Origin: Octopus bimaculoides
Taxonomy: Eukaryota
Assembly (NCBI RefSeq): GCF_001194135.2
Contig: NC_068997.1
Coordinates: 50,662,398 to 50,707,231, forward strand
Reading direction: 5' to 3'
DNA length: 44,834 nucleotides
The notes under the pieces were generated by a model. That model did not search any database, was not told the origin of the DNA, and saw only the letters and a program-made list of their open reading frames with translations. Made by a program: the position numbers and the translations under genes. Below, piece after piece: positions 1,570 to 34,113 of this stretch (position 1 is the stretch's first letter; every line of letters begins with the position of its first letter).

Positions 1570-1913
1570 TCAGCAATGTGTCTCTGAATCATGCCTGAAT
1601 GATGGTAATTGAGTTGGGGTTGATAAGCGTTTATTTAGAACTCTTTTTGATCGGAGGGGAAGTGGAGGAGGAGGAGGTAGAGTTGATGAGGATGGTGGTG
1701 ATGGTGCATGTTCTGATGGGGGGTTCTCTAATTCTGGTGGTTCTGATTTCCTTCTTGGTAAAGGCATTGGTGGTCGTCTCAAAATTGAAGGATTTTCATA
1801 CATAACACTTCCTTGATGTTGGGGAATATTTTTAGATTTCCATTCACAAGGTTTAAACAAAAACTCAGGTAAAATTTGCAAGAAATTTCTGTTTTTCTGG
1901 TAAATACAAATAT
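1570..1913 (-). CDS. CABIT adaptor terminal coding exon (ICIYQKNRNFLQILPEF...VMYENPSILRRPPMPLPRR...PPPPPLPLRSKR...SETHC-stop)
   Basis: TTACTTGTAG acceptor in phase 1, open to TGA at 1572-1570. Contains YENP (1789-1800) and PPLPLR (within 1651-1677). Confidence 0.78.
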
Positions 1914-1952
1914 CTACAAGTAATAAAATAAAATAAAGTAAGTGGAAATATT

Positions 1953-1987
<35 letters not shown>

Positions 1988-2830
1988 CACCATCATCACC
2001 ACCAGCACCAGCACCAGCACCACCACCACCGTTTAACATCCACTTTCTATGCTGGCATGGGCTGGATGGTTTGACTCAGGACTGGCAAGCCAGGAGGCTG
2101 CACCAGGCTCCAATCTGATACGGCAAGGTTTCTGTAGCTGGATGACCTTCCTAATGCCAACCACTCCAAGAGTGTAGTGGGTGCATTTTACAAACCACAG
2201 GCACGGGAGCCAGTCAGGTGGCACTGGCATCGACCACGCTCGAATGGCACTTTTTAGATGCCACCAGCACGGGAGCCAGTCAGGCAGCACTGGCATCGAC
2301 CACACTCATATGGTGCTTTTTACATGCCACTGGCATCGATTACGCTTGAATGGTGCTTTTTACATGTCACCAGTGTGGTATGACGTCAGTGTCTGGGGAG
2401 GCTGACCGGAAGGGGAAAAAAGGTAGAAGGAGCCTCGATTGGCATTTCGTGCCCTTTTCGAACGGGGCTGCGGTCAGGACAAGACGTGTTAAGCGACGGT
2501 CTAGGTTTGGGAAGGTTTGGGAGAAGCAGCTGCTATTCCTGGTGTACTTTGGGTCGGGGCAAGCTTCAAGGATAGGATACCGCAAGACGGACTCGCAGTC
2601 GAGGAAAGGAAAACCGAGGTAAGGCGATTACATCTACTCGTACGCACACACCACAACCAGCACGGGAGCCAGTCAGGCAGCACTGGCATCGACCACAACA
2701 ACGATTTCACTTGACTCAGTAAGTCTTCTCAAGCACAGCGTATTATCTGATGATTGAAGGGTACTTTTAAACGGGCTGGTTATGCAACACCGGTATAAGC
2801 CATGGATACGATCTCACTTGGCTTGCTGGG
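1988..2830 (-). mobile_element. RTE LINE 3' region with tandem subrepeats, interrupted by the solo LTR
   Basis: Reverse complement of the 3' region seen at 26040-26974 and of the (GAT)n-tailed copy ending near 9398. Confidence 0.7.
2374..2655. mobile_element. Solo LTR, 282 bp
   Basis: Termini TGTGGT...ACCACA (TG..CA, 6-bp inverted) and 5-bp target duplication ACCAG at 2369-2373 and 2656-2660. GC/CpG-rich; interrupts an RTE 3' repeat. Confidence 0.75.
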
Positions 2831-4267
2831 TCTTCTCGATAATAATATATTGTTATTATTATTATTATTATTCAGGTCACTGCCTGAAATTGAACTTGGA
2901 ATCTTGGGGTTAGTAGCCTGCACTCTTAACCACTACACCATATGCCCGTAAGCATATGCTGTAGTGGTTTCAAATTTTGGCACAAGGCTAGCAATTTCAG
3001 GGAGGAAATAGGTCGGTTACATTGACCCCAGTACTTACTTTATTGCCCCTGAAATGATGAATGGCAGAGTCAACTTCTATGGGATTTGAACTCAGGATGT
3101 AAAGACGGATGAAATGTTGCTAAGCGTTTTGCCCTGCATGCTAATGATTCTGCCAGCTCAATGCCTTTATATTAAACGCCATCATCGTTTAATGTCCGTT
3201 CTCTATGCTGGCATTGGTTGAACGGTTTGACAGGAGTTGGCCATCCAGGGAACTGTCCAGACTCCAGTTGTCTATTTTGGCAAGGTTTCTAAGGCTGGAT
3301 GCCCTTCCTAAACATCAACCACTTTACAGGGTGTTCTGGGTGCTTTTTATGTGTCACCGGCATGGGTGCATTTATGCTCCGAATTTGATGGACATATAGT
3401 GGTACATAAGCCAAATCAGAAAATCTCTAGTGAGACTTTTTATTGATGTAGTTCGAAGAGACACAGAACAGGTCGAAACATGTGTTGTACCCAATAAAAT
3501 CTTTTACTCATTCCATCTATTTTATTAATACTATAGCAAAAATTTAGATTCAGATGAATTAGGTACTTAAGTTGAGGCACCAGAATTTAGTACGGTATTA
3601 TCCATACAGTTTCAAAATAAGGTGATTAAAATCAAAATAAGCAACAAGGATATCCAGAGGTAATGCAGCACGATCGTTTCAAGCGACTCCATTTAATTGA
3701 ACAATGCAACCATTACATCCGAATCTAAATTTTTGGTTATTAATACTTTTTATATATATATATATATATATATATCATCATCATCATCATNNNNNNNNNN
3801 NNNNNNNNNNNNNNNNNNNNNNNNNNNNNNNNNNNNNNNNNNNNNNNNNNNNNNNNNNNNNNNNNNNNNNNNNNNNNNNNNNNNNNNNNNNNNNNNNNNN
3901 NNNNNNNNNNNNNNNNNNNNNNNNNNNNNNNNNNNNNNNNNNNNNNNNNNNNNNNNNNNNNNNNNNNNNNNNNNNNNNNNNNNNNNNNNNNNNNNNNNNN
4001 NNNNNNNNNNNNNNNNNNNNNNNNNNNNNNNNNNNNNNNNNNNNNNNNNNNNNNNNNNNNNNNNNNNNNNNNNNNNNNNNNNNNNNNNNNNNNNNNNNNN
4101 NNNNNNNNNNNNNNNNNNNNNNNNNNNNNNNNNNNNNNNNNNNNNNNNNNNNNNNNNNNNNNNNNNNNNNNNNNNNNNNNNNNNNNNNNNNNNNNNNNNN
4201 NNNNNNNNNNNNNNNNNNNNNNNNNNNNNNNNNNNNNNNNNNNNNNNNNNNNNNNNNNNNNNNNNNN

Positions 4268-4374
4268 ACCACATGTCCATACCAGCGCAATCGTCTCTCT
4301 TGCACGCCACAACTGATGCTTCTAATGTTCAGCTTTTCTCTTAAGATACTTACACTCTGACGGGTATTCACATT

Positions 4375-4378
<4 letters not shown>
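4268..4378 (-). mobile_element. RTE LINE fragment
   Basis: Translates VNVNTRQSVSILREKLNIRSISCGVQERRLRWYGHV, near-identical to part of the 25.7-kb copy. Confidence 0.85.
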
Positions 4379-4412
<34 letters not shown>

Positions 4413-4908
4413 TATATAGCCAGGAAATGTAGGCGCATGGCTCAGTGGTTAGAGCGTCAGGCTGACAATGAAGTAGTAAATTTGATTCCCAGACTGGGAT
4501 GCGTGTCCTTGAGCAAGACACTTTATTTCACATCACTCCAGTTTACTCAGCTGGCAAAAACGAGTAGTGATGTAATTGGTGCCAAGCCGTATCGGCCTTT
4601 GCCTTTCACTTGGATAACATCAGTGACAGGGAGATTGGAGGCTGGTATGCATGGGCGACCATTGGTCTTCCATAAACAACCTTGCCAGAAATGTTTATAT
4701 TTCTGCAAATCCACCAGTTCAAATTGTCATCTTTTTATTAACTCCAAAATGATGAAAGTTGACCATGGTAGGATTTGAATTCAGAGTATAGAGAGCCATG
4801 CCTGTGTTAAATATTGAATAGCCTTGAGGCTAAATGATTACTATTAAATAACCAATCCTGGTAATCAAAGAAATTATATTTTTTTATCATAATCTGAAGG
4901 CAATTTAC

Positions 4909-5070
4909 CTGTGAAATTCCTTGCGTTGTATGTTGGTAATGAAGACAGATTTGACTTTAAACGTGCATAGTATGGGAGCCAAGCATATTTACTAGAGTAA
5001 CGTACATCATGAGCACGTTCGACGTCTATGTTTAACTCAATAGGCAGTATAAATTCACGAGCAGGCACAT
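4909..5070 (-). CDS. CABIT adaptor coding exon 4 (VPAREFILPIELNIDVERAHDVRYSSKYAWLPYYARLKSNLSSLPTYNARNFT)
   Basis: TTTTTTCAG acceptor, CAG|GTAAAT donor, 162 nt, phase 1-1. Confidence 0.82.
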
Positions 5071-5853
5071 CTGAAAAAAGATAATTAATGAAATAATGAG
5101 GATTTTACTTGAAAAATTATCATAAATACTATCTCACAGTGTTATAAAATGCAATCAGTGAATTAAAATTAATTTTCTATTTTTAATGGAATAGTGCAGT
5201 TGAAATCTTCAATAATAAAAGAAACTTGAAGACCACATTTTGATAAAAATATATTAAAGTTAGAAGTTTTAAGTATTTTCTAGACAGTGTAGACTTTACT
5301 AATCGCTTTCTTTTAATAAAGGTTATACACTTTTAACTAACTGATAAACAGCTTTCTTTATTTTAGAGTATAGAATTATAAAACATTAGGCCATATATCA
5401 CGATTAAAAAAAATTTATTTACTGGTTCTGCTGTTTTTTTTTCATGCAATAGAAGAAACATTGAGCCGAAGGATAAGATACCGAATTAGAAGTATTGAGA
5501 TTGAAGTCAAGAATGCAAAGAGAAAGCATAGCTATCAACCAGACAATTGGAGCCTGGTGCAGCTCTCTGGCTTGCCAGCTTCTGTCAAATGGACGATAAA
5601 TAATGATGATGGCCTTTGTGCGGGTGACACGTAAAAGCATCCACTACACTCCCTGAGTGGTTGGCGTTAGGAAGGGCATCCAGCTGTAGAAACTCTGCCA
5701 GATCAGATTGGAGCCTGGTGTTGCCATCTGGTTTCACCAGTCCTCAGTCAAATCGTCCAACCCATGCTAGCAAGTGTCTTCTACTATAGCCTCGGGCCGA
5801 CCAAAGCCTTGTGAGTGGATTTGGTAGACGGAAACTGAAAGAAGCCCGTCATA

Positions 5854-5900
<47 letters not shown>

Positions 5901-6344
5901 CTGTGTTTGTCCCCCCACCATCGCTTGACAACCGATGCTGGTGTGTTTACGTCCCCGTAACTTAGCGGTTCGGCAAAAGAGACTGATAGAATAAGTACTA
6001 GGCTTACAAAGAATAAGTCCTGGGGTCGATTTGATTCAACTAAAGGCGGTGCTCCAGCATGGCCGCAGTCAAATGACTGAAACAAGTAAAAGAGTAAAAG
6101 AGTATATGTATGTATGTATATAATACATATATGATAGGCTTCTTTCAGTTTCCATCTCTCAAATTCACTCACAATGCCTCGATTAGAAGACACTTGCCCA
6201 AGGTGCTGCACAGTGGGACTGAACCCGAGGCCATATAGATGGGGAAACAAGCTACTTAACCACACAGCCATGCCTGCATCTTTGGAGTCATAATATAGAA
6301 AATAATAAAAATGTCTAAAAATGATAAATAAAAACACATCATAC

Positions 6345-6527
6345 CATCGATCATATCGTAACACAGAAGAAATGTTAGGGATCTTTTCTGTGTAATTGTA
6401 ACTTCGCGTGTATATCTGAATAAATCATGGTGAGATGAAGTTGGGAGTTCAGACTGGAGATTAACAGTAAATGGTAAGGAATACTTCAGCAGAGCAGAAG
6501 CCAGTGTTTCTAATTGATTAGGTCTGC
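6345..6527 (-). CDS. CABIT adaptor coding exon 3 (RPNQLETLASALLKYSLPFTVNLQ...EVTITQKRSLTFLLCYDMID)
   Basis: TTATTTCAG acceptor, G|GTATGA donor, 183 nt, phase 1-1, stop-free. The L....KYSLPF.V pattern resembles the second CABIT half. Confidence 0.82.
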
Positions 6528-7281
6528 CTGAAATAAATAAATAAATGAATAGATAAATAGACAGACAGACAGATAAACAAACAGACAGACAGATATATAT
6601 ATATATATATATATATATANNNNNNNNNNNNNNNNNNNNNNNNNNNNNNNNNNNNNNNNNNNNNNNNNNNNNNNNNNNNNNNNNNNNNNNNNNNNNNNNN
6701 NNNNNNNNNNNNNNNNNNNNNNNNNNNNNNNNNNNNNNNNNNNNNNNNNNNNNNNNNNNNNNNNNNNNNNNNNNNNNNNNNNNNNNNNNNNNNNNNNNNN
6801 NNNNNNNNNNNNNNNNNNNNNNNNNNNNNNNNNNNNNNNNNNNNNNNNNNNNNNNNNNNNNNNNNNNNNNNNNNNNNNNNNNNNNNNNNNNNNNNNNNNN
6901 NNNNNNNNNNNNNNNNNNNNNNNNNNNNNNNNNNNNNNNNNNNNNNNNNNNNNNNNNNNNNNNNNNNNNNNNNNNNNNNNNNNNNNNNNNNNNNNNNNNN
7001 NNAAATTCATAAACTTATCAATAATATTCTCAGGAAATCAATATTTAATATTTCTAAAGATATATATCCAATATGACATGGTAATATAATGAATTTAAAA
7101 TATAAATATACGAAATATAAATATAAACATGTATAAAAATATGAATGTAGATAAAGATACATGTGAATATAAATGTGTATAAAAATTTTATGCGTAATTA
7201 AGCATGAATATTGTAAAGTCTAAAATATAAAAAAGCCTAAAATTTAAAGAATTAAACATCTGACGATCGTTTCGCGGATAT

Positions 7282-7315
<34 letters not shown>

Positions 7316-8113
7316 AATCCCCTGAGACCCCTTTTGGAGCCCCCCCACCTATATATACTGTCAAAAATGTGGTGCATGCAAGTATTTAATAAAGTGGGGG
7401 CACGTGGCTTAGTGATTAGGGCATTTGGCTCATGATCATAACAACAGGAGTTTAATTTCCAACAGTTCATTGTGTCCTTGAGCAAGACACTTTATTTCAT
7501 GTCGCTCCAGTTCATTCAGATGGCAAAAAAGAGAAGTAACTATATTTCAAAGGGACAGCTTTGTCACATTCCGTGTCATGCTGAATCTCCCTGAGAACTA
7601 CATTAAGGGTACGTGTGTCTGTGGAGAACTCAGCCACTTGTATGTTAGTTTCATGAGCAGGCTGTTCTGTTGATTGGATCAACTGAAACCCTCATCACCA
7701 TAACTGATGGAGTGCCAGTTCATGCATAAAGGAGAGGCCATTATTTTATGCCTTGCAACACAGGAAAACCATCTGATCCATACCAAGTGGTTACTTAACA
7801 AGGTTAAAAACCCTCACATATTTGGCATGTTTTGGTTCCTCTATAAAAACAAAAACAAAACAATGAAGATCAAAAGTCAAATAGGAGAAATGACCTTTCT
7901 ACAGGATCTTAGAATTAATGCTGCTGGATATACTGAGGTGCTGAAAGAGAAGTTAAAGACATTAAGGTTATGTAGAAGATAATCAGTGGCTCGTTACAAT
8001 GGCAACAGTATATCATGTAATGAAATAAATGGAGGGTGTTGACAAAGAGAATTCATAAATGATTTAATTAGGATAAGATGGCTAATTAGAAAAAAATGAA
8101 TATTAATAAATAC

Positions 8114-8222
8114 CTTTTGATATCGTGAATTGGCAGTCACTTTCATATGGTGCAGTTAAAACACAAACAGAATTGAAACCGATAACTCTTTCTTGTTGAA
8201 AGACCTTACAGACGGCAATCAC
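8114..8222 (-). CDS. CABIT adaptor coding exon 2 (VIAVCKVFQQERVIGFNSVCVLTAPYESDCQFTISK)
   Basis: TTTCCTTTAACAG acceptor, AAG|GTATTT donor, 109 nt. Phase 0 to 1 bridges the neighbouring exons exactly. Confidence 0.8.
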
Positions 8223-8324
8223 CTGTTAAAGGAAAGAAATTATAAATACATACATAGATACATATCTATCTGTCCGTCCATCTGTCTATCTATCTATCTA
8301 TTTAATCTGTCTGTCTGTCTAATT

Positions 8325-8362
<38 letters not shown>

Positions 8363-8492
8363 AGGGCTCTACCTTCTGGAACTCCAAATAAGACTCTGTC
8401 TCCAAAGAATTTATAACACATATGCACTTGTTATTAATATTGGCATAATGACTCTCCCCGGACACAATAAAAGACTTGCTTTTAATATTTAC

Positions 8493-8627
8493 CTGATCTT
8501 TTTCGAGTGTTGTCTCTTCTGAACTACCATAATATCCTTCTGCTGGTTTTATAATCATAGGTAGTCTGTAAGGCCCTTTAAAATACTCTGATAAATGTTG
8601 TTTTCTACCCCATAAATACATGGCCAT
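8493..8627 (-). CDS. CABIT-domain adaptor (GAREM/THEMIS-like), first coding exon (MAMYLWGRKQHLSEYFKGPYRLPMIIKPAEGYYGSSEETTLEKDQ)
   Basis: Acceptor TTTTACAG before 8677; ATG at 8627 in AAAATGG context; donor CAG|GTAAAT. The W...L....YRLP.I..GYYG pattern resembles the CABIT N-terminus (GAREM1 W..VPLDLLVSTYRLPQI). The exon is also open upstream of the ATG. Confidence 0.78.
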
Positions 8628-8844
8628 TTTCTCATGAAGCAGCAGCTTGACAACGAACAACCAAATATGAATTTGTGCTGTAAAAACAAATACAAAAAAA
8701 ATGAAATTAAATGTATGTTGTGTGGCTAAGAAATGTATTCCTCCAATCACATGGTTCTGGGTTCAGTCTCACTGTCCTGCACTTTGGGCAAATGTCTTCT
8801 ACTTCACTGATCACAACCTTGTGAGTGGATTTAGCAGATGGATT

Positions 8845-12378: not shown

Positions 12379-15216
12379 GTAAGAGTTTTGATATGTCTAT
12401 TGCACTTTCTTTCGTTGAAATGTTTCGGTTTAAATTTTTCTCTTTATATTAATTATGTTAATTTAATTAACATACCTACACTTCATAACTTTCAGAAAAA
12501 TTTATATTGTTTTAATAAAATTTTCTATAGATATCTTTCTGATGTTATAGATTCCGATTATATCGAAATTCAATGTGAAAGAAAAAAGAGAAAAGAAAAA
12601 AAGAAAATTGTTGGGTGCACACACCTCACACATGGGGTGGGTGGGGCAAAATGAGTAATTTCTGATTTCTTGTTATTTTTTTTTTTTCCCTTATCTGTTT
12701 CAAATCGTTATATTGCAAGTATTGCATCGCCATTCTGTACTGTTGTATCAACTGTGCGAGACTTTGAAACATTCAGGTGACAGGTACATTTTTTCGAGAG
12801 ATTTCTCTTCAACTTTGACCCGGCTGTAATTGAGGTTGCTAATAAAATATCTGGAAAATTTTTGCCGTCTGACAATCAACATCCTTTTCTCTGTTGGATT
12901 CCTAGTAAATTTTCCCACACTAATGTCGAATTTGATCATTTTCAATTTACAAGAAATGATGTCTAAACTGGGGCAGAATGATTACTAATTACAATAATTT
13001 CTTCTCTTTAACTGCATAAATATGTCAGAGAGGAACTCCGGCAGGCGGAGGTAAGGANNNNNNNNNNNNNNNNNNNNNNNNNNNNNNNNNNNNNNNNNNN
13101 NNNNNNNNNNNNNNNNNNNNNNNNNNNNNNNNNNNNNNNNNNNNNNNNNNNNNNNNNNNNNNNNNNNNNNNNNNNNNNNNNNNNNNNNNNNNNNNNNNNN
13201 NNNNNNNNNNNNNNNNNNNNNNNNNNNNNNNNNNNNNNNNNNNNNNNNNNNNNNNNNNNNNNNNNNNNNNNNNNNNNNNNNNNNNNNNNNNNNNNNNNNN
13301 NNNNNNNNNNNNNNNNNNNNNNNNNNNNNNNNNNNNNNNNNNNNNNNNNNNNNNNNNNNNNNNNNNNNNNNNNNNNNNNNNNNNNNNNNNNNNNNNNNNN
13401 NNNNNNNNNNNNNNNNNNNNNNNNNNNNNNNNNNNNNNNNNNNNNNNNNNNNNNNNNNNNNNNNNNNNNNNNNNNNNNNNNNNNNNNNNNNNNNNNNNNN
13501 NNNNNNNNNNNNNNNNNNNNNNNNNNNNNNNNNNNNNNNNNNNNNNNNNNNNNNNNNNNNNNNNNNNNNNNNNNNNNNNNNNNNNNNNNNNNNNNNNNNN
13601 NNNNNNNNNNNNNNNNNNNNNNNNNNNNNNNNNNNNNNNNNNNNNNNNNNNNNNNNNNNNNNNNNNNNNNNNNNNNNNNNNNNNNNNNNNNNNNNNNNNN
13701 NNNNNNNNNNNNNNNNNNNNNNNNNNNNNNNNNNNNNNNNNNNNNNNNNNNNNCGAATCTTGAAATTAAAAAAAATAAATTGTGATGTGTTTCAGTATGT
13801 ATGTGTGCGCGCCCACCAATTTTTTTTTATCATAATCTACACTATCCCAAAGGTATTTGTAAAAAATTTCATTTAAAATTACCCATTTTTCTGGAAATTA
13901 TGAAGAAACAAACTTGATTCAGGTGAATTATCTGAAACTTCTTTCCAACAAGGAAATAAATTTTTATGACTAATTCTGATATAATTGTAATCAGTAATTG
14001 TTCATTTAAAAAAAAATCTACACCATCTGGAAGGTATACGAAAAAAAATTCCGTTGAAAAATATCAATTTTTGTGGGAGTAATGAGGAAGCCAATTGTGA
14101 CCAGTAGACACACATTTCTGTAGTTTCGCCATTAAATTTAGGTCCCTGCAGGTGCTTTAGAATTAACGTTTCATTTAATAAATATGTCGTAATTTAAAAA
14201 AAAATATTTCGGAAATATACTTAGCATGCACGTGATTTGGCGAAAGTAATGAATACGTACACCCGGTGTTTCGGAATAGGGTTTTTGTTAGGCCGAAAAC
14301 ACCTCCGCCAGTTATTTTATCTGAGACTGTGTTGAAACTAAATCAATTACAACTTGAAAGACACACGTAAAAACTGTTAACAGGGTGAAGTCAACCACGG
14401 GTATAATGTTTTAAACGAAATGATCAGTTTCTTTTTTCTTGTGTGTGCGTGTTTTTGAATAGCTAAATATGTCTTAAATGTGTTGTAAAATGGAAGTGAC
14501 CTGAGACCTTTTGGAAATAAAGAAAATTCACTATAAGTGTGTTGGAAAGTTTTAAATAAAGTTTAGCAATATATACAAATGGGAAAACCAGTGTAAGGGA
14601 CAGGTTAATTAATAACCGTAGTGACAAAGTAAAATTTAAAACAAAGCGGGACGGAAGATATTGTGGGAAAGTGAAGAAAATAATGAATTTATATATAAGA
14701 ATACAAATATACATACGAGTAAACCTCGATCTCTTGCCCACCAGAAATAACATCCAAATCTTGCCCCAAATTACACAGTACCGAATAAAAAAAAATAATA
14801 AAATGCGTAAGGACACAAAAATGCAATATGGTCGTATTAGGAACGCTTAAGTTTGCTTGATCAGAACAGATAAGGGTCGAATAACAATAATGATTACGCA
14901 TATGCACATATACGTGTACACATTAGCACTGGGAGAATGTGAATTGAAAGAGGATTGTGTAGCTTAAAAGTTCATTTTGCAAACATGTAATGGAAAGACC
15001 CCCGCCATTTTCTCGCATATTATTGGTTTTCTAAATGTTTTTTTTGGTCAAAAACCCACGTTTTCTGATACAGAGATTCCGGAAAATTGCCAAAAATTGG
15101 AATTTTGAAATAGCGGAATTCTAGGAATAGCTATTCAAAAACTCAGCCTAACTTTTTTTCTGTCTTCTCATTAATAAAAAGAAAAGGGTGGGGTTGAAAA
15201 TATTTCCTTAGTATAC

Positions 15217-18080: not shown

Positions 18081-20395
18081 AATCCTTTCTACTATAGGCA
18101 CAAGGCCTGAAATTTTGGGGAGGGGGGCAGTTCGACCCAAGTACACAACTAGTACTTATTTTATTGACCTGAATATAATAATAATAATAAAAATAATAGT
18201 CGCTGATACATCAATAATAATTATGAGTAGTAAAGAAACATCAGCACTGTCCATGGACATTGTTTAGTCAAAAAGTAAACGCTGTAAAGATGGACCCATA
18301 ACAAAACCAATCAAAAGAGAAAGAATGGTGGACAGATAACCATGAATACTAAGAAATTGTTGATTTATGATTTACACACACTACTATGCAACACTCTCAA
18401 AACATACAGGAATAAACTCATACCAGGCGTGGTTGTGTGGTATGAAGCTTGCTTCCCAACTACATGGTTCCAGGTTCAGTCTCACTGCATGGCATCTTGG
18501 ACAAGAGTCTTCAGCTACAGCCTTGGCTGACCAGAGCCTTGTGAATGGATTTGGTAGATGGAAACTGAAAGAAGCCTGTCGTGCATATATATATATATAT
18601 ATATATATGTCATATACATATATGTATGTACATATTTGTGTGATGTGGCAGGGATTTGACGGCTGGGTGCCCTTCCTAACACCAACCACTCTGCAGAGTG
18701 GACTCGGTGCTTTATGTGTGGCACTAGCACAGGCGAGGATAGTTTTGGCATGATTTTTACAGCTGGATGCCCTTCCAGATGCCAACCACGTTACAATGTG
18801 GACTGGGTGCTTTTAACATGGCACCAACACTGACAGGGTCACCAAGTAACTTGCAAGACAAGGAATTAGGAGAGGGACAGTGGGGGCATTTGAGGACGGG
18901 AACTTGTGTCGGAGGATGAAAGGTTAGAGGGGAAGCAGGTGTCTTGCCACAACAGGGCGGTGGGGTGGGGGTGGGGTCATTAGAGGAGGTGATCCGGTAT
19001 CAGATGATGAAAGGTTAGAGTGTAACAGAGAAATGGAGAGGTAGAAATAGGTGTCTTGCTATAGAGGAGGCAGATGGTAAGAGAGAGAGAGAGGGGGGTA
19101 TAAGAAAGAGGCCAGAAACAAGTGTACTGATGTAGTCAGAGGGAAAACAAGAGGAGGAGGAGGAGAGAGAGAGTGACTAAGGGAAAGAGAGAGAGAGGGT
19201 AGGAAAGGGCAAAAGTGTAAGAGAGATGGTGTAGGGCTAAGGTATACTCACAAGTAACAAGAATATGAGTGTAGAATCTGGGTATAAAAATAGGGTGTGA
19301 GTGTTGGGGGTGGAGGAGCAGCGATACAGTTTGTATGTATGTATATATCTATGTGTGCATGTCTTTGTGTCTGTGTTTGTCTCCCCCCCCACCCCCACCA
19401 CTTGATTGACAACCGGTGTTGGTGTGTTTATGCCCCTACGACTTAGAAGCTCAATAAACGAAACCTATGGAATAAGTACCAGTCTTTATAAGAAAAAAAA
19501 AGTCCTGGGATCAATTTGTTTAACTATGAACCATTCGTGACTGTGCTCCAGCACTGTTGTATTTCCCTCGGAAGACTCGCCGAGATAACACAACGAGTTG
19601 TACAATTTAATTATTACATTTATTATTCAATTGCATACAAAGAACGCACTCACCTAATGTTCGTTATAAATAAACAAAAGTCATGTCCGCCATATATATA
19701 TCAATGACATTTTACTACGACAGTCACACAAGACAACAATGAAACAATGAACTCAGACGAACCACATTGACACACGGAACGTCAGACGAATTTCATATCT
19801 AACAGTCCATATAACAAGCATGGTCACAGTGGAATGACTGAAATGAAAGATGAAAGACTCACTGAATATCCTGTTGTCGCTGGGTAATTTTCACAATTGA
19901 ATGCTTTCACAGATTTTGGAATAACACACCCACATAACTCGTTAGATTTTCTCTATTCATGGGAATTTTTCAAATGATTTTTCATCACTCCCAAGCAAAT
20001 GGGAGTGGGGAAAGCTTTTTATGATCTTGCAAAATAATATAAATTTTTTTCTACCCCCTTCTTCCGATTTTGGCCAACTTATTTTTTGCACTACACACTT
20101 GAAACGATGGGAGAAGCCTTGAAGGTTAATAAAAAAATATTTTAGAAATTGACAATTGTCATTACAATCTCCACTTTCTTATTTTCCAACAGAAAATGAA
20201 ACATAACTTCAAAATAATAGTGAATTTATAGGCGCAGGAATGGCTGTGTGGTAAGTAGCTTGCTTACCAACCACATGGTTCCGGGTTCATTTCCACTGCA
20301 TGGCACCTTGGGCAAGTGTCTTCTACTATAGCCTCAGGCCGACCAAAGCCTTGTGAGTGGATTTGGTAGACGGAAACTGAAAGAAGCCCGTCGTA

Positions 20396-20434
<39 letters not shown>

Positions 20435-20981
20435 TTGTGTGTCTGTGTTTGTCCCCCCAACATCGCTTNNNNNNNNNNNNNNNNNNNNNNNNNNNNNNNN
20501 NNNNNNNNNNNNNNNNNNNNNNNNNNNNNNNNNNNNNNNNNNNNNNNNNNNNNNNNNNNNNNNNNNNNNNNNNNNNNNNNNNNNNNNNNNNNNNNNNNNN
20601 NNNNNNNNNNNNNNNNNNNNNNNNNNNNNNNNNNNNNNNNNNNNNNNNNNNNNNNNNNNNNNNNNNNNNNNNNNNNNNNNNNNNNNNNNNNNNNNNNNNN
20701 NNNNNNNNNNNNNNNNNNNNNNNNNNNNNNNNNNNNNNNNNNNNNNNNNNNNNNNNNNNNNNNNNNNCCCACAACCACCTGGCGTCTTTCTTGTTTCTTT
20801 GTCACTCTGACATATATTAATGTTTCTTAATATTTTCCTCCCTATAAACACATTGGTGGTCCATTGTGGCTTGCAAGAAACAACAGCAAAAACAATTTCC
20901 TATTTAAATCTTTAACCCCACCCACATCAAGTGAGTCCATGTGTGCATGCGCGCGCGTGTGTGTGTGTAACAATATACATA

Positions 20982-21185
20982 TATTGGGTTGTCCGGAAAG
21001 TTCATGCCAATTTTCCAAAAGGTTCTTCTCATTCAATTCACGTGGTACCCAAACATCGTAGTGATTTGTGTACCCAAGCTTTACCAGGTGCTCATGAACA
21101 ACGGATTTTGATAGGTTGAGGCTTTCTGCCAATTCTCGGGTTGTGCAATGTGGGTTATTCTCAATTAATAACTTGATTTGTTTAC
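20982..21185 (-). mobile_element. Mariner deletion derivative
   Basis: IENNPHCTTRELAESLNLSKSVVHEHLVKLG...VWVPREL (HTH and WVPHEL-like motif), next to a TATTGGGTTG TIR-like end. Confidence 0.85.
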
Positions 21186-21242
21186 GTACCACCAGCATGG
21201 ATACCAATTCACGTGACACTGGTATCTGCTATGACTGCAATT

Positions 21243-22873: not shown

Positions 22874-24089
22874 AAAAATATTTAGCACTGATAACTGACA
22901 ATCTCATTTTCATTGAGTGATATCTGCAAAAATGCTGACAAATCAAAAATTGTTAATTGCAAGTTAGACTTTGATTTTTTGGTGTTTATATAAAGAGAAA
23001 AGAGGAAGGCAGACAAATGGTTTCTTTGTTACAGAAAGAGAAGGAAAAGTTGCTGACAGACTAGAGAGATTTGAACACAGCCATGTTACATCTGGCACAC
23101 TCAACGATCAGCCAGTCTGAACAACCAAATCTGTTACTAATCTAAAAATGGCAAGGGACACATGTACTCATTCTTCCAAGCTCTATTTCTCTGCACCCAA
23201 TTGCATTAGCTGTACAACCAAACCAGGGCCTCACGGAAGCCAAGTGATTGAGCTCCTTTTGAGTGTTGGGCCTTACAGAAGCAATGACCGAAACCTTTGG
23301 CATTATGTCATACTTGAGAAGAAGACCCATCAAGCCAAGGAAAATTGCAGTCATTCTGAGCCAAACTGCACCCCTCTTCATAGGTGACACCTATCTCGGT
23401 CAAGTCTTCCCACAGTCTCTTGCCTCATCTTCACTGGCCATCCTCTTTTTCTCCTGTCCACTTGATGGCTGCCCTTGTGGCCAAGCAGCTTCCTTCTCTG
23501 CATCTGGCCATGTGATATTGGCCAAGCAGCTCTTTTCATGATTGTTTGTTTGTGATGTGGTCATGGCAGATTATTTTCAGGATATTTCTTAGGCACCAGG
23601 AATGAAAAGCATTCACAATGTTGCAGATTCTCTCCCTTTGCCTCTATGTTTTACTTGCGTTCAATGCTGTAGGAATAACATCATCATCATCATCATTTAA
23701 CGTCCGCTTTCCATGCTAGCATGGGTTGGACGATTTGACTGAGGACTGGTGAAACCAGATGGCTACACCAGGCTCCAATCTGATTTGGCAGAGTTTCTAC
23801 AGCTGGATGCCCTTCCTAACGCCAACGGCTGTGCTCGAAATGGTGTATTTTATGTGCCACCTGCACAGGAGATGCATATAGATGAAGTTCAATCCCTTGG
23901 TGTCTGAAAGAGAATCACCAAATAAGTCTCAATCATTGGACAACTGCCATCATTCTGCCACATCTAATCTTGATCTCAGTTTCCGCCTAGGTACATAATG
24001 AACCGGAAAATTGAATATTTTGTCCAGTAAAATTAAACAATAAAAAAAACAGAAATTATTATGATTTTATTCTCATTCTTTAATTTTAG

Positions 24090-24384
24090 AGAAAAAAATG
24101 TTGTGCTTGAAATTGAAACCAAAATGTTTGAAGATTTTTATGAAAAGCAAGACCTCAATTCGGTGATGTTAAACGCATCAAATAACACATCTTCATTTGG
24201 ATCAACTGGAGAGATTTCTCGACCAATTGGCAGAAAACGAAGCAAAGTTCGTAACACAATTGATCGTACACTACGCTTAACGACAAACCAAAAATGTGAC
24301 ATTGCACAGAAGACTGTTGAAAAACTGAAAACTGAAATAAAGAAATCTACAGATGAAGCTGAAAAAGTGGTCGATACGTATAAA
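24090..24384 (+). CDS. CCDC113: CCDC113 exon 2 (EKNVVLEIETKMFEDFYEK...GRKRSKVRNTIDRTLRLTTNQKCDIAQK...VVDTYK)
   Basis: Acceptor TTTTAG, donor AAA|GTGAGT. Resembles remembered human CCDC113 segments (ALKTETEMFEKYY; RRRSKSR...LTADQKLELVQKE). Confidence 0.93.
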
Positions 24385-25004
24385 GTGAGTTTGTTATAAT
24401 TATTTGGGATTTTCTGTTTCTCTATAAAATTGTCTCAGTGATTTTTAAAAAAATTCTGCAGGTATGGCTGCGTGATAAAGAAGGTTGTTGAGATGTTATC
24501 TCAGAACAAATACTGCAGGAACTGGTCTATTGACAGTATGATACGTAGATGGCTATTTTAATTAATAACTGCCTCAGTTGCATATCTGAGCTATATATAT
24601 ACATGTANNNNNNNNNNTTATACAAAATAAACATTGCAGAATGAACTTAATATTTCTTTTATTACATAATTTATATTCAATTCAACAATTCACATTTTGA
24701 CCAATCTTGTGCCATGTTCATTAGCATGTCAGTAATCGTTGATTTAATCATATATATATATTTAACAAAGTAAAAGCAATACTTAACAATAAGATAAAAT
24801 CCCTGTGATGGCAAGAGATTGTGCAATTTGCAAACATTTCCCTCCACCACCATTACCCGAACTTCGAGCACCTCCTCTGTAATTTCCAACAGTATGGAAT
24901 ATTAAAAAGGCATTTTTTTTTTGCATGTGACACAGAAAAAAAGAAAAATATTCTGCTAAAAAAACAGATATTTGCATTTTACATTTAAACCATTTCTGTT
25001 TTAG

Positions 25005-33645: not shown

Positions 33646-34113
33646 AAGTATTATTATCATTATCATTATAACTACCACTACTACAACTACAAATATATAA
33701 AGAAACTTGAATCCATCCATATGTTCTGTCTGCAACATAAAAAATCAAATGTCAAAATTTTTGGAAAATCTGATATTTCTAGTATCAAAAACATGCTGTT
33801 GCTGATTGCAGGACATTCTTGAATGTAAGATCATAAGTTCACTTCTCAATCGTGTCATAAGATGCCCCTGTGCCAGTGTCACATAAAAAGAACCCAGTAC
33901 ACTCTGTAAAGTGGTTGGTGTTAGGAAGGGCATCCGGCCATAGAAACCATGCCAAGATAGACAATTGAAGGCTTCGTGCAGCTTTCTGGCTTGCCAGCTC
34001 ATGACAAACTGTCCAACCCATGCCAGCATGGAAAACAGATGCTAAATGACGATGATGATGATATTTATTTCCAATTTCACTTATTTTTTTAATTTCTATA
34101 TTTTGTCTCACAG

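Follow-up and report, generated by a model that had tools for sequence, protein, structure and literature searches.

LOC106874805 of Octopus bimaculoides as a candidate CABIT-core protein without SH3-like head or SAM domain and with a disordered, motif-bearing tail

Gene structure at the LOC106874805 locus

The window analysed here, a stretch of 44,834 nt of Octopus bimaculoides genomic DNA (RefSeq assembly GCF_001194135.2, contig NC_068997.1, forward-strand positions 50,662,398–50,707,231), is AT-rich and contains many repeats resembling short interspersed nuclear elements (SINE-like repeats), (TA)n runs and 14 assembly gaps filled with N. Its minus strand carries the gene LOC106874805, whose product is interpreted below as a candidate CABIT-family protein that would keep the core of the domain but lack both the SH3-like head and a SAM domain. 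CABIT is a rare metazoan fold, whose structures were solved only in 2024–2026 and whose function is still debated. An initial annotation of the window, made from the sequence letters alone, had described the gene as a compact single-CABIT adaptor with Grb2-type docking motifs, encoded by five phase-compatible exons that together form a stop-free frame of 310 codons.

This gene model was borne out by the splice sites and by a RefSeq entry. The five exons are separated by four GT..AG introns, each with a polypyrimidine tract, and coding parts of 135, 109, 183, 162 and 344 nt join to a stop-free coding sequence (CDS) of 933 nt for 310 amino acids (aa). The product matches, at 100% identity from the first to the last residue, the NCBI entry 'uncharacterized protein LOC106874805 isoform X2 [Octopus bimaculoides]' (XP_014778146.1, with three more accessions; UniProt A0A0L8GUJ8). 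Therefore, the model is neither a chance open reading frame (ORF) nor new. RefSeq lists the protein as uncharacterised, but it is no unannotated discovery, as the identical model was already there.

All exons lie on the minus strand and are given in window positions. The exon with the start codon (8493–8677, ATG at 8627–8625) is identical to XP_014778146.1; its part 8627–8493 codes for aa 1–45, and 8677–8628 is 5′ untranslated region (UTR). Coding exon 2 (8114–8222) encodes aa 46–81 and the first base of codon 82, and thereby the N-terminal part of the CABIT core. The following intron 2 (6528–8113) is in phase 1, splits codon G82 and holds the assembly gap 6620–7002. Coding exon 3 (6345–6527, aa 82–142) encodes the C-terminal part of the core and contains LLKYSLPFTVNL and FLLC137YDM, and coding exon 4 (4909–5070, aa 143–196; ILPIELNIDVE...KYAWLPYYA) encodes the end of the core. 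Intron 4 (1914–4908), again in phase 1, holds the gap 3791–4267 and SINE-like repeats. Coding exon 5 (1570–1913, aa 197–310, TGA stop at 1572–1570) carries the last strand of the domain, up to aa ~204 (window 1891), and then the disordered proline-rich tail.

The initial annotation had placed the upper bound of the gene at 8677. This position is indeed the acceptor side of the ATG exon (TTTTTACAG/CAC at 8678/8677), but the acceptor is used in isoform X1 to splice a further 5′ exon. RefSeq isoform X1 (P0011) has 339 aa, begins with MLFLVGKRSRFT-PQIHIW... and differs from isoform X2 solely by a 29-aa N-terminal extension, MLFLVGKRSRFTPQIHIWLFVVKLLLHEK, from this upstream exon. The coding match and the 3′ end of the exon were located at 14717–14753 on the minus strand, with the ATG at 14753 and the donor GTATGT after 14717. 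The extension is hydrophobic and may be UTR read as coding sequence.

The assembly gaps within introns 2 and 4 had raised the concern that exons could be hidden, which was not borne out. The orthologous locus of Octopus sinensis (L001) is free of N runs and contains coding exons of 135, 109, 183, 162 and 320 nt, so that exons 1–4 are equal in length between the two species. Five coding exons, with exon 3 again at 183 nt, are also present in the Argonauta hians locus (L002), which is likewise without N runs, and the proteins of O. bimaculoides, O. sinensis and Argonauta are collinear across both gap-bearing junctions. In the gap-free intron 2 of O. sinensis, an ORF scan showed no plausible or head-like coding frame, and tblastn with the head regions of THEMIS gave no match. 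Because these gap-free loci show the same five coding exons, genomic comparison indicates that the gaps conceal no coding exon. Similarly, a GTACAT donor-like site noted 1 nt after the stop has no bearing on the CDS, since the TGA precedes it and the terminal ...SETHC with its stop is identical in O. sinensis.

Intron sizes differ strongly between the two Octopus species (270, 1586, 1274 and 2995 nt in O. bimaculoides versus 7262, 3400, 4804 and 752 nt in O. sinensis), as would be expected if transposons turned over heavily in these introns. Most of the gaps examined have (TA)n or (ATG)n microsatellites at their edges, for example at 3740–3800, 4268–4420, 6590–6620 and 7003–7340. A recurring SINE-like family, visible as ORFs with '...MPFLTPTTLQS...' at 18367–18753 and 33745–34029, has copies in introns 3 and 4. 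Gap edges thus coincide with microsatellites and SINE-like repeats, and therefore the assembly breaks there.

CABIT homology and relatives of the octopus protein

An exhaustive HMMER search with an alignment of three octopus sequences retrieved nine proteins at E ≤ 1e-3 among 1.84 billion representatives. These are the orthologues from O. sinensis, O. vulgaris and Argonauta (P0004, E 1.4e-53), two hemichordate proteins from Glandiceps (P0005, XP_077990283.1, E 7e-7) and Ptychodera (P0006, XP_070534421.1, E 1e-5), a 465-aa ORF from a transcript-type Logan contig (P0007), an annelid protein from Lamellibrachia (P0008, KAI0207688.1), a gastropod fragment from Batillaria (P0010) and a repetitive protein (P0009).

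The Pfam CABIT profile (PF12736) matched aa 92–163 of the octopus protein at profile positions 169–242 with 25.1 bits (E = 1.4e-5). This is above the gathering cut-off of 24, though marginal, and agrees with the earlier assignment to the family as a single-CABIT protein. The same profile scored 23.4 bits for O. sinensis, 14.2 for Argonauta, 39.1 for Lamellibrachia, 29.8 for Ptychodera and 26.9 for Glandiceps. Pfam assigns CABIT to the latter three proteins and to the Batillaria fragment, with a maximum of 39 bits, and SAM to the Glandiceps and Ptychodera proteins above the cut-off and to P0007 below it (19.5 bits versus 23).

A second route led from the domain to known structures. When a profile of the ~204-aa domain built from seven proteins was compared with 177,635 PDB sequences, it matched THEMIS only (E = 7.8e-5), covering CABIT2 residues 272–344 and 441–463. 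Single-sequence and C-terminal-half searches of the PDB sequences returned nothing relevant. Word-indexed protein searches with profile A3 or the Ptychodera CABIT region found octopus proteins or one Ptychodera paralogue only, and no bridge to a named GAREM. As the Pfam matches and the PDB profile match to THEMIS agree, homology to CABIT is supported via two independent routes at the level of sequence.

In the AlphaFold2 model, aa 1–204 form a mostly β domain with a mean predicted local distance difference test (pLDDT) of 80 and a predicted template modelling score (pTM) of 0.72, containing long strands at 47–61 and 123–141. Two long β strands have also been described for the CABIT core (PMC13320886). 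The tail, aa 205–310, has pLDDT below 50, in line with disorder.

A CABIT core without the SH3-like head

To relate the octopus domain to the solved structures, profile coordinates were mapped on a human THEMIS sequence that is 100% identical to PDB 9iaz_B residues 1–576. PF12736 has 255 positions, and THEMIS covers virtually the whole profile, with positions 1–254 in CABIT1 and 1–249 in CABIT2. THEMIS CABIT1 residues 17–264 correspond to profile 1–254, and CABIT2 aligns in three pieces, 281–349 (profile 1–70), 340–440 (profile 59–162) and 430–525 (profile 152–250). The invertebrate relatives match only the two ends of the profile: Lamellibrachia at 28–89 (profile 1–66) and 97–181 (profile 163–246), Glandiceps at 27–101 (profile 1–76) and 92–176 (profile 162–244), and Ptychodera at 27–107 (profile 1–82). 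The octopus protein matches at 92–163 (profile 169–242), with no match in the first half.

Consequently, about 90 profile positions (~67–162) are without counterpart in the octopus protein and its hemichordate and annelid relatives, with at most 8 residues in their place. The missing positions correspond to THEMIS residues ~348–440 in CABIT2 and ~90–177 in CABIT1, which is the published SH3-like head. The head boundaries reported from the structures are 347–436 for CABIT2 (bioRxiv 10.1101/2024.10.01.616165) and 90–177 for CABIT1 (PMC13320886). These heads were defined crystallographically and hold Cys413 and Cys152, the cysteines that gave CABIT its name (bioRxiv 10.1101/2024.10.01.616165; PMC13320886; PMC13381594). 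Because the missing profile positions are those of the SH3-like head, the domain reads as a core-only CABIT that is shared with few invertebrate proteins, and this, together with the intron at the site of the head, is the new element of the locus. The CABIT assignment of the initial annotation is right but incomplete: its term 'compact' cannot be taken to denote a small yet complete domain, as a head of ~90 residues with the namesake cysteine is missing.

Deletion of the head from THEMIS gave a concordant result. Without residues 347–436, its best single-domain score against the family profile rose from 20.1 to 26.2 bits, and the alignment continued without a break from KFKRRP to YPISELCKQFRLPFNVKV, which matches octopus ETLASALLKYSLPFTVNL. 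In this alignment, the junction 346/437 falls on octopus K81/G82, where codon 82 is split by the phase-1 intron 2. The intron thus lies no more than one residue from the site of the head, a location which suggests that the head may have been gained or lost as an exon-sized module. Furthermore, the P0007 frame runs without interruption on a contig of 2,031 nt, and the domain is collinear in five lineages, which argues that the compact form is no artefact of gene prediction.

The octopus protein does contain a cysteine, C137, that might be mistaken for the namesake residue. A by-eye alignment had equated C137 (FLLCYDM) with THEMIS Cys413 (VLACEKI), but this was rejected after mapping by Pfam coordinates, which puts aa 92–163 on THEMIS ~447–517 and matches SYLLISDF and LNMTVQ with TFLLCYDM and LNIDVE. 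C137 therefore sits in the C-terminal part of the core, where THEMIS has SYLLISDF and most relatives have G. A HMMER extension of octopus 88–150 to THEMIS 345–405 put C137 on Cys401, not on the conserved Cys413, and was treated as a repeat-like ambiguity. In THEMIS itself, residues 318–368 before the head and 413–463 at its end share the pattern hh..LxIP....F.......Y.l.Ei.....LP..V.v, which may be an internal repeat within CABIT.

Absence of SAM and motifs of the proline-rich tail

Both RefSeq isoforms end in ...SETHC, and the Argonauta protein is shorter still (267 aa). Pfam found no SAM domain in either isoform, and tblastn with three SAM domains gave noise only in the window and in the O. 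sinensis locus, including 10 kb downstream of the gene. The statement that the protein is without SAM was thus confirmed over this range. Loss of SAM in octopods is most likely, since the closest outgroup proteins have the order CABIT / proline-rich / SAM.

The tail is rich in proline (23 of 106 residues, 22%) and contains both PPLPLR and RRPPMPLPR. YENP (aa 235–238; 1789–1800, minus strand) includes the sole tyrosine of the tail (VMYENP) and matches pYxN. PPLPLR (aa 279–284; 1651–1668, minus strand) belongs to the class II PxxPxR motifs and lies within PPPLPLRSKRVLN, which is a conserved block. The best-conserved block is RRPPMPLPRRKSE (aa 242–254; 1741–1779, minus strand), which combines PxxxPR with a basophilic RRKS site at 1741–1752. 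pYxNx and PxxPxR are the consensus motifs of the Grb2 SH2 and N-terminal SH3 (n-SH3) domains (PMC10968029, PMC13381594).

Conservation separates these elements. O. sinensis keeps YENP and PPLPLR, and RRPPMPLPRRKSE is identical there. The partial model of O. vulgaris has YDNP, and PxxPxR was not seen in this model; in Argonauta, PPNP replaces YENP and there is no second proline block. RRPPMPLPR is kept in both O. vulgaris and Argonauta, so that the element common to all octopods is NPxxxRRPPMPLPR. This element, which was overlooked in the initial annotation although it is the best conserved of the tail, is neither canonical class I nor class II. It fits PxxxPR, which we take to be a CIN85/CD2AP-type motif.

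When the tail was shuffled 20,000 times with its composition preserved, P..P.R occurred in 34%, Y.N in 4.6% and both in 1.6% of the shuffles. The Grb2-type strings YENP and PPLPLR are therefore present as had been claimed, but they are weak evidence, given their conservation in Octopus only and the frequency of P..P.R in shuffles. The RxxK / PxRPxK motif had no match in any octopod orthologue, and the tail contained no match to [SIVL]xYxx[ILV], the pattern of the immunoreceptor tyrosine-based inhibitory motif (ITIM).

Between the two Octopus species, identity in the tail is concentrated in islands, namely LPEFLFKPC, YENPS-LRRPPMPLPRRKSE, PPPLPLRSKRVLN, STPTQLP and SETHC. Such concentration in a near-neutral tail speaks for short linear motifs with a function. 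After the domain, distant relatives carry PxxPx[RK], RRxS and sometimes YxN; the last is seen in Glandiceps (YYEN) and in Lamellibrachia (YYNL, YQNV). In most family members, RRxS follows shortly after CABIT (PRRKSE, TRRKSR, PRRMSE, KRRTSS, FRRHSF), a recurrence that hints at a shared serine-phosphorylation switch.

Evolutionary rate

The proteins of O. bimaculoides and O. sinensis share 73% identity. Nei–Gojobori estimates for this pair were 0.141 for the non-synonymous (dN) and 0.200 for the synonymous rate (dS), giving an ω (dN/dS) of 0.70 with a bootstrap 95% interval of 0.48–1.07; ω was 0.63 for the CABIT part and a near-neutral 0.90 for the tail. Within the same BLAST blocks, nucleotide identity was 86.2% in exons (909 columns) versus 92.1% in flanking non-coding sequence (1,752 columns), and the exon was less identical than its flank in all five cases. 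The figure for the flanks is partly an ascertainment effect, as other nearby non-coding blocks are 78–89% identical. Even so, the coding sequence is clearly not more conserved than its surroundings. This suggests that constraint is relaxed or that positive selection is acting, though ORF, exon lengths and fold are kept out to Argonauta. Exon 2 shows 11 non-synonymous changes versus 1 synonymous change, and exon 3 is the most diverged.

Comparison with known CABIT proteins

GAREM1 and GAREM2 (FAM59A/B), single-CABIT adaptors that associate with Grb2, resemble the octopus protein in having one N-terminal CABIT-family domain followed by a disordered proline-rich region with Tyr/Ser phosphosite-like motifs, and the nearest non-octopod relatives (Glandiceps, Ptychodera, P0007) show the GAREM order of CABIT, proline-rich region and SAM. 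In contrast to GAREM, the octopus protein lacks SAM and comprises 310 aa instead of 875 aa. Its CABIT is without head, while that of GAREM is even longer than the THEMIS domain (~344 aa; bioRxiv 10.1101/2024.10.01.616165), and its tail is without the LPYEEL-type ITIM for Shp2 (PMC8086153). GAREM binds Grb2 via its proline-rich region, through the C-terminal SH3 domain (c-SH3) more than n-SH3, and does not use its phosphotyrosines as the direct contact site (PMC10968029; PMC8086153).

THEMIS and THEMIS2, which act in T- and B-cell signalling, share with the octopus protein a proline-rich sequence shortly after the domain. However, they contain tandem CABIT domains, whereas the octopus protein has a single domain (aa 1–204) and is disordered in the remainder. 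It also lacks the head with Cys152/Cys413 and the PxRPxK motif for the Grb2 C-terminal SH3 domain (PMC13381594); THEMIS–Grb2 binding involves this motif plus both complete CABIT domains (PMC13381594). The octopus sequence EGYYG (aa 30–34, window 8526–8540) forms a conserved G-aromatic loop whose Y33 is shared by all octopods. The loop is close in position to the Y34 loop of THEMIS CABIT1, with the alignment off by one residue and uncertain, and is a lead only. THEMIS Y34 is the LCK site on which Shp1 binding depends (PMC13320886).

The hemichordate and annelid compact CABIT proteins share the headless domain, which is collinear over ~200 aa at 19–26% identity. The hemichordate proteins differ in that they keep the C-terminal SAM, whereas the octopod proteins end 60–105 aa after the domain.

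Other features of the window and of the Argonauta locus

The ORF at 20842–21219 (minus strand) contains a helix-turn-helix of the kind typically found at the N-terminus of Tc1/mariner transposases (HTH_24, 27.9 bits, with weak Transposase matches) and is probably a transposon remnant adjoining the gap 20469–20767. At 24061–24399 (plus strand), a 112-aa open frame is K/E-rich and coiled-coil-like, with no significant Pfam match. Upstream of the Argonauta orthologue, a gene on the opposite strand (L002 1–665) has the Pfam domain CCDC113_CCDC96_CC, and the downstream gene has Ribosomal_S19. A synteny check with the low-complexity fragment of the Argonauta neighbour gene was uninformative, and synteny with the window was not established.

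Proposed role and alternative explanations

Combined, these results favour, with a probability of roughly 55%, LOC106874805 as a headless, SAM-less CABIT-core protein whose disordered tail would serve as an SH3-docking scaffold. The protein would be cytosolic, with aa 1 to ~204 folded as a β-rich CABIT core and aa ~205–310 disordered, and the missing head would sit exactly at the phase-1 intron 2. The octopod gene would most likely be a SAM-less derivative of a GAREM-like lineage. As a presumed non-enzymatic scaffold, the protein could dock SH3 or similar polyproline-binding domains through its proline-rich islands, candidate partners being Grb2/Drk and the SH3 domains of CIN85/CD2AP type. Y235 and the RRKS site may offer phospho-regulated docking, and the CABIT core may act as a second protein–protein interface. 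Gene structure, orthology, CABIT homology, the lack of head and SAM, the disorder of the tail and the way its motifs are conserved were shown by the analysis; the adaptor function and every partner named here are inferred, with Grb2 as only one candidate. The earlier interpretation is therefore supported in part, and what is new in the locus does not lie in the Grb2 motifs.

Several observations weigh against this reading. The PF12736 score of the octopus protein barely exceeds the threshold, its N-terminal half alone draws no Pfam hit, and the C-terminal-half profile alone fails to retrieve THEMIS from the PDB sequences. Foldseek with full-length and domain-only models found no match at E < 0.08 in a PDB library to 2026-04-08 that apparently lacks the THEMIS entries 9i3p, 9iaz and 9uou, which are present among the PDB sequences; the best matches, at E ~0.1, were hybrid tudor and YdhK. 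The edges of the deletion are ambiguous, as THEMIS 318–368 and 413–463 both resemble family positions ~57–106. Finally, the dN/dS of 0.70 and exons more diverged than their flanks imply weak constraint on most residues.

A dedicated Grb2 adaptor, in effect a minimal GAREM in which pY235 binds the Grb2 SH2 domain and PPLPLR its N-terminal SH3 domain, appears rather doubtful. Both motifs fit the published SH2 and n-SH3 consensus (PMC10968029, PMC13381594), lie in blocks that show no difference between O. bimaculoides and O. sinensis amid a fast-evolving background, and occur jointly in only 1.6% of tail shuffles. Moreover, YxN also follows the domain in Glandiceps and Lamellibrachia, and all characterised CABIT proteins bind Grb2 (bioRxiv 10.1101/2024.10.01.616165). 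However, the Argonauta orthologue, with PPNP for YENP and a tail that ends earlier, has neither motif, shuffling by itself yields PxxPxR in 34% of cases, and the octopod-wide element RRPPMPLPR is not a canonical PxxPxR. GAREM contacts Grb2 mainly through c-SH3 and not directly through phosphotyrosines (PMC10968029), and THEMIS uses PxRPxK/RxxK and both complete CABIT domains (PMC13381594), of which RxxK is absent from the octopus protein. The rapid divergence could instead mean that the gene is lineage-restricted and has lost or re-purposed its adaptor role. Positive selection, as in conflicts of immunity or reproduction, might then be at work, or constraint might be relaxed, and the motifs would be incidental. 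Such a reading is in keeping with dN/dS values of 0.70 overall and 0.90 in the tail, 73% amino acid identity between congeners, exons at 86.2% versus adjacent non-coding sequence at 92.1% in all five exons, orthologues found only in octopods among the 1.84 billion representative proteins, and the absence of both SAM and head. We regard it as unlikely, as three octopod genera, among them Argonauta with 37% identity, preserve the ORF together with the lengths and phases of its exons, the predicted fold is confident, and tail identity is confined to discrete islands and not evenly spread; the flank identity is also biased by ascertainment, with other non-coding blocks at 78–89%.

A true full CABIT, with or without SAM, whose exons are hidden in N gaps or lie outside the window would make the headless form an artefact of the gene model. 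The gap 6620–7002 does lie in intron 2, where a head exon would have to sit, and the window holds just 1.57 kb downstream of the stop. Nevertheless, this explanation is largely refuted and very improbable: the gap-free O. sinensis and Argonauta loci yield the same five exons, intron 2 of O. sinensis shows neither a head-like frame nor a tblastn match to the THEMIS head, the 10 kb beyond the O. sinensis gene gave no SAM match, conservation extends to the stop codon and the 5 residues before it, and the same compact domain is present in the uninterrupted P0007 ORF and in four other lineages.

Returning to the headless CABIT core, its origin may be considered only tentatively. The family could represent a stand-alone CABIT core, either ancestral and preceding the insertion of the head or produced by loss at the exon level, with intron 2 marking the exact site at which the SH3-like module was added to the core, or removed from it, in the THEMIS/GAREM lineage. 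Since exons are more diverged than introns, the octopod copy may have been positively selected. The authors of the CABIT2 structure reportedly raised the speculation that a core existed first and received the SH3-like head by insertion. If this origin is true, the octopus gene and its relatives would directly support, at the genomic level, the insertion hypothesis put forward by Beyett et al., and the conserved cysteine and the head would be dispensable for a working CABIT protein.

A natural headless CABIT family would make the idea of head insertion testable, with one member that has an intron at the would-be insertion point. Its proteins would provide a minimal core of ~200 aa for structural work and would reveal for which CABIT functions, such as Grb2 or Shp binding, the head and its cysteine are required. 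To the biology of cephalopods, the gene would add one more fast-evolving, octopod-restricted signalling component, which is modest when taken alone.

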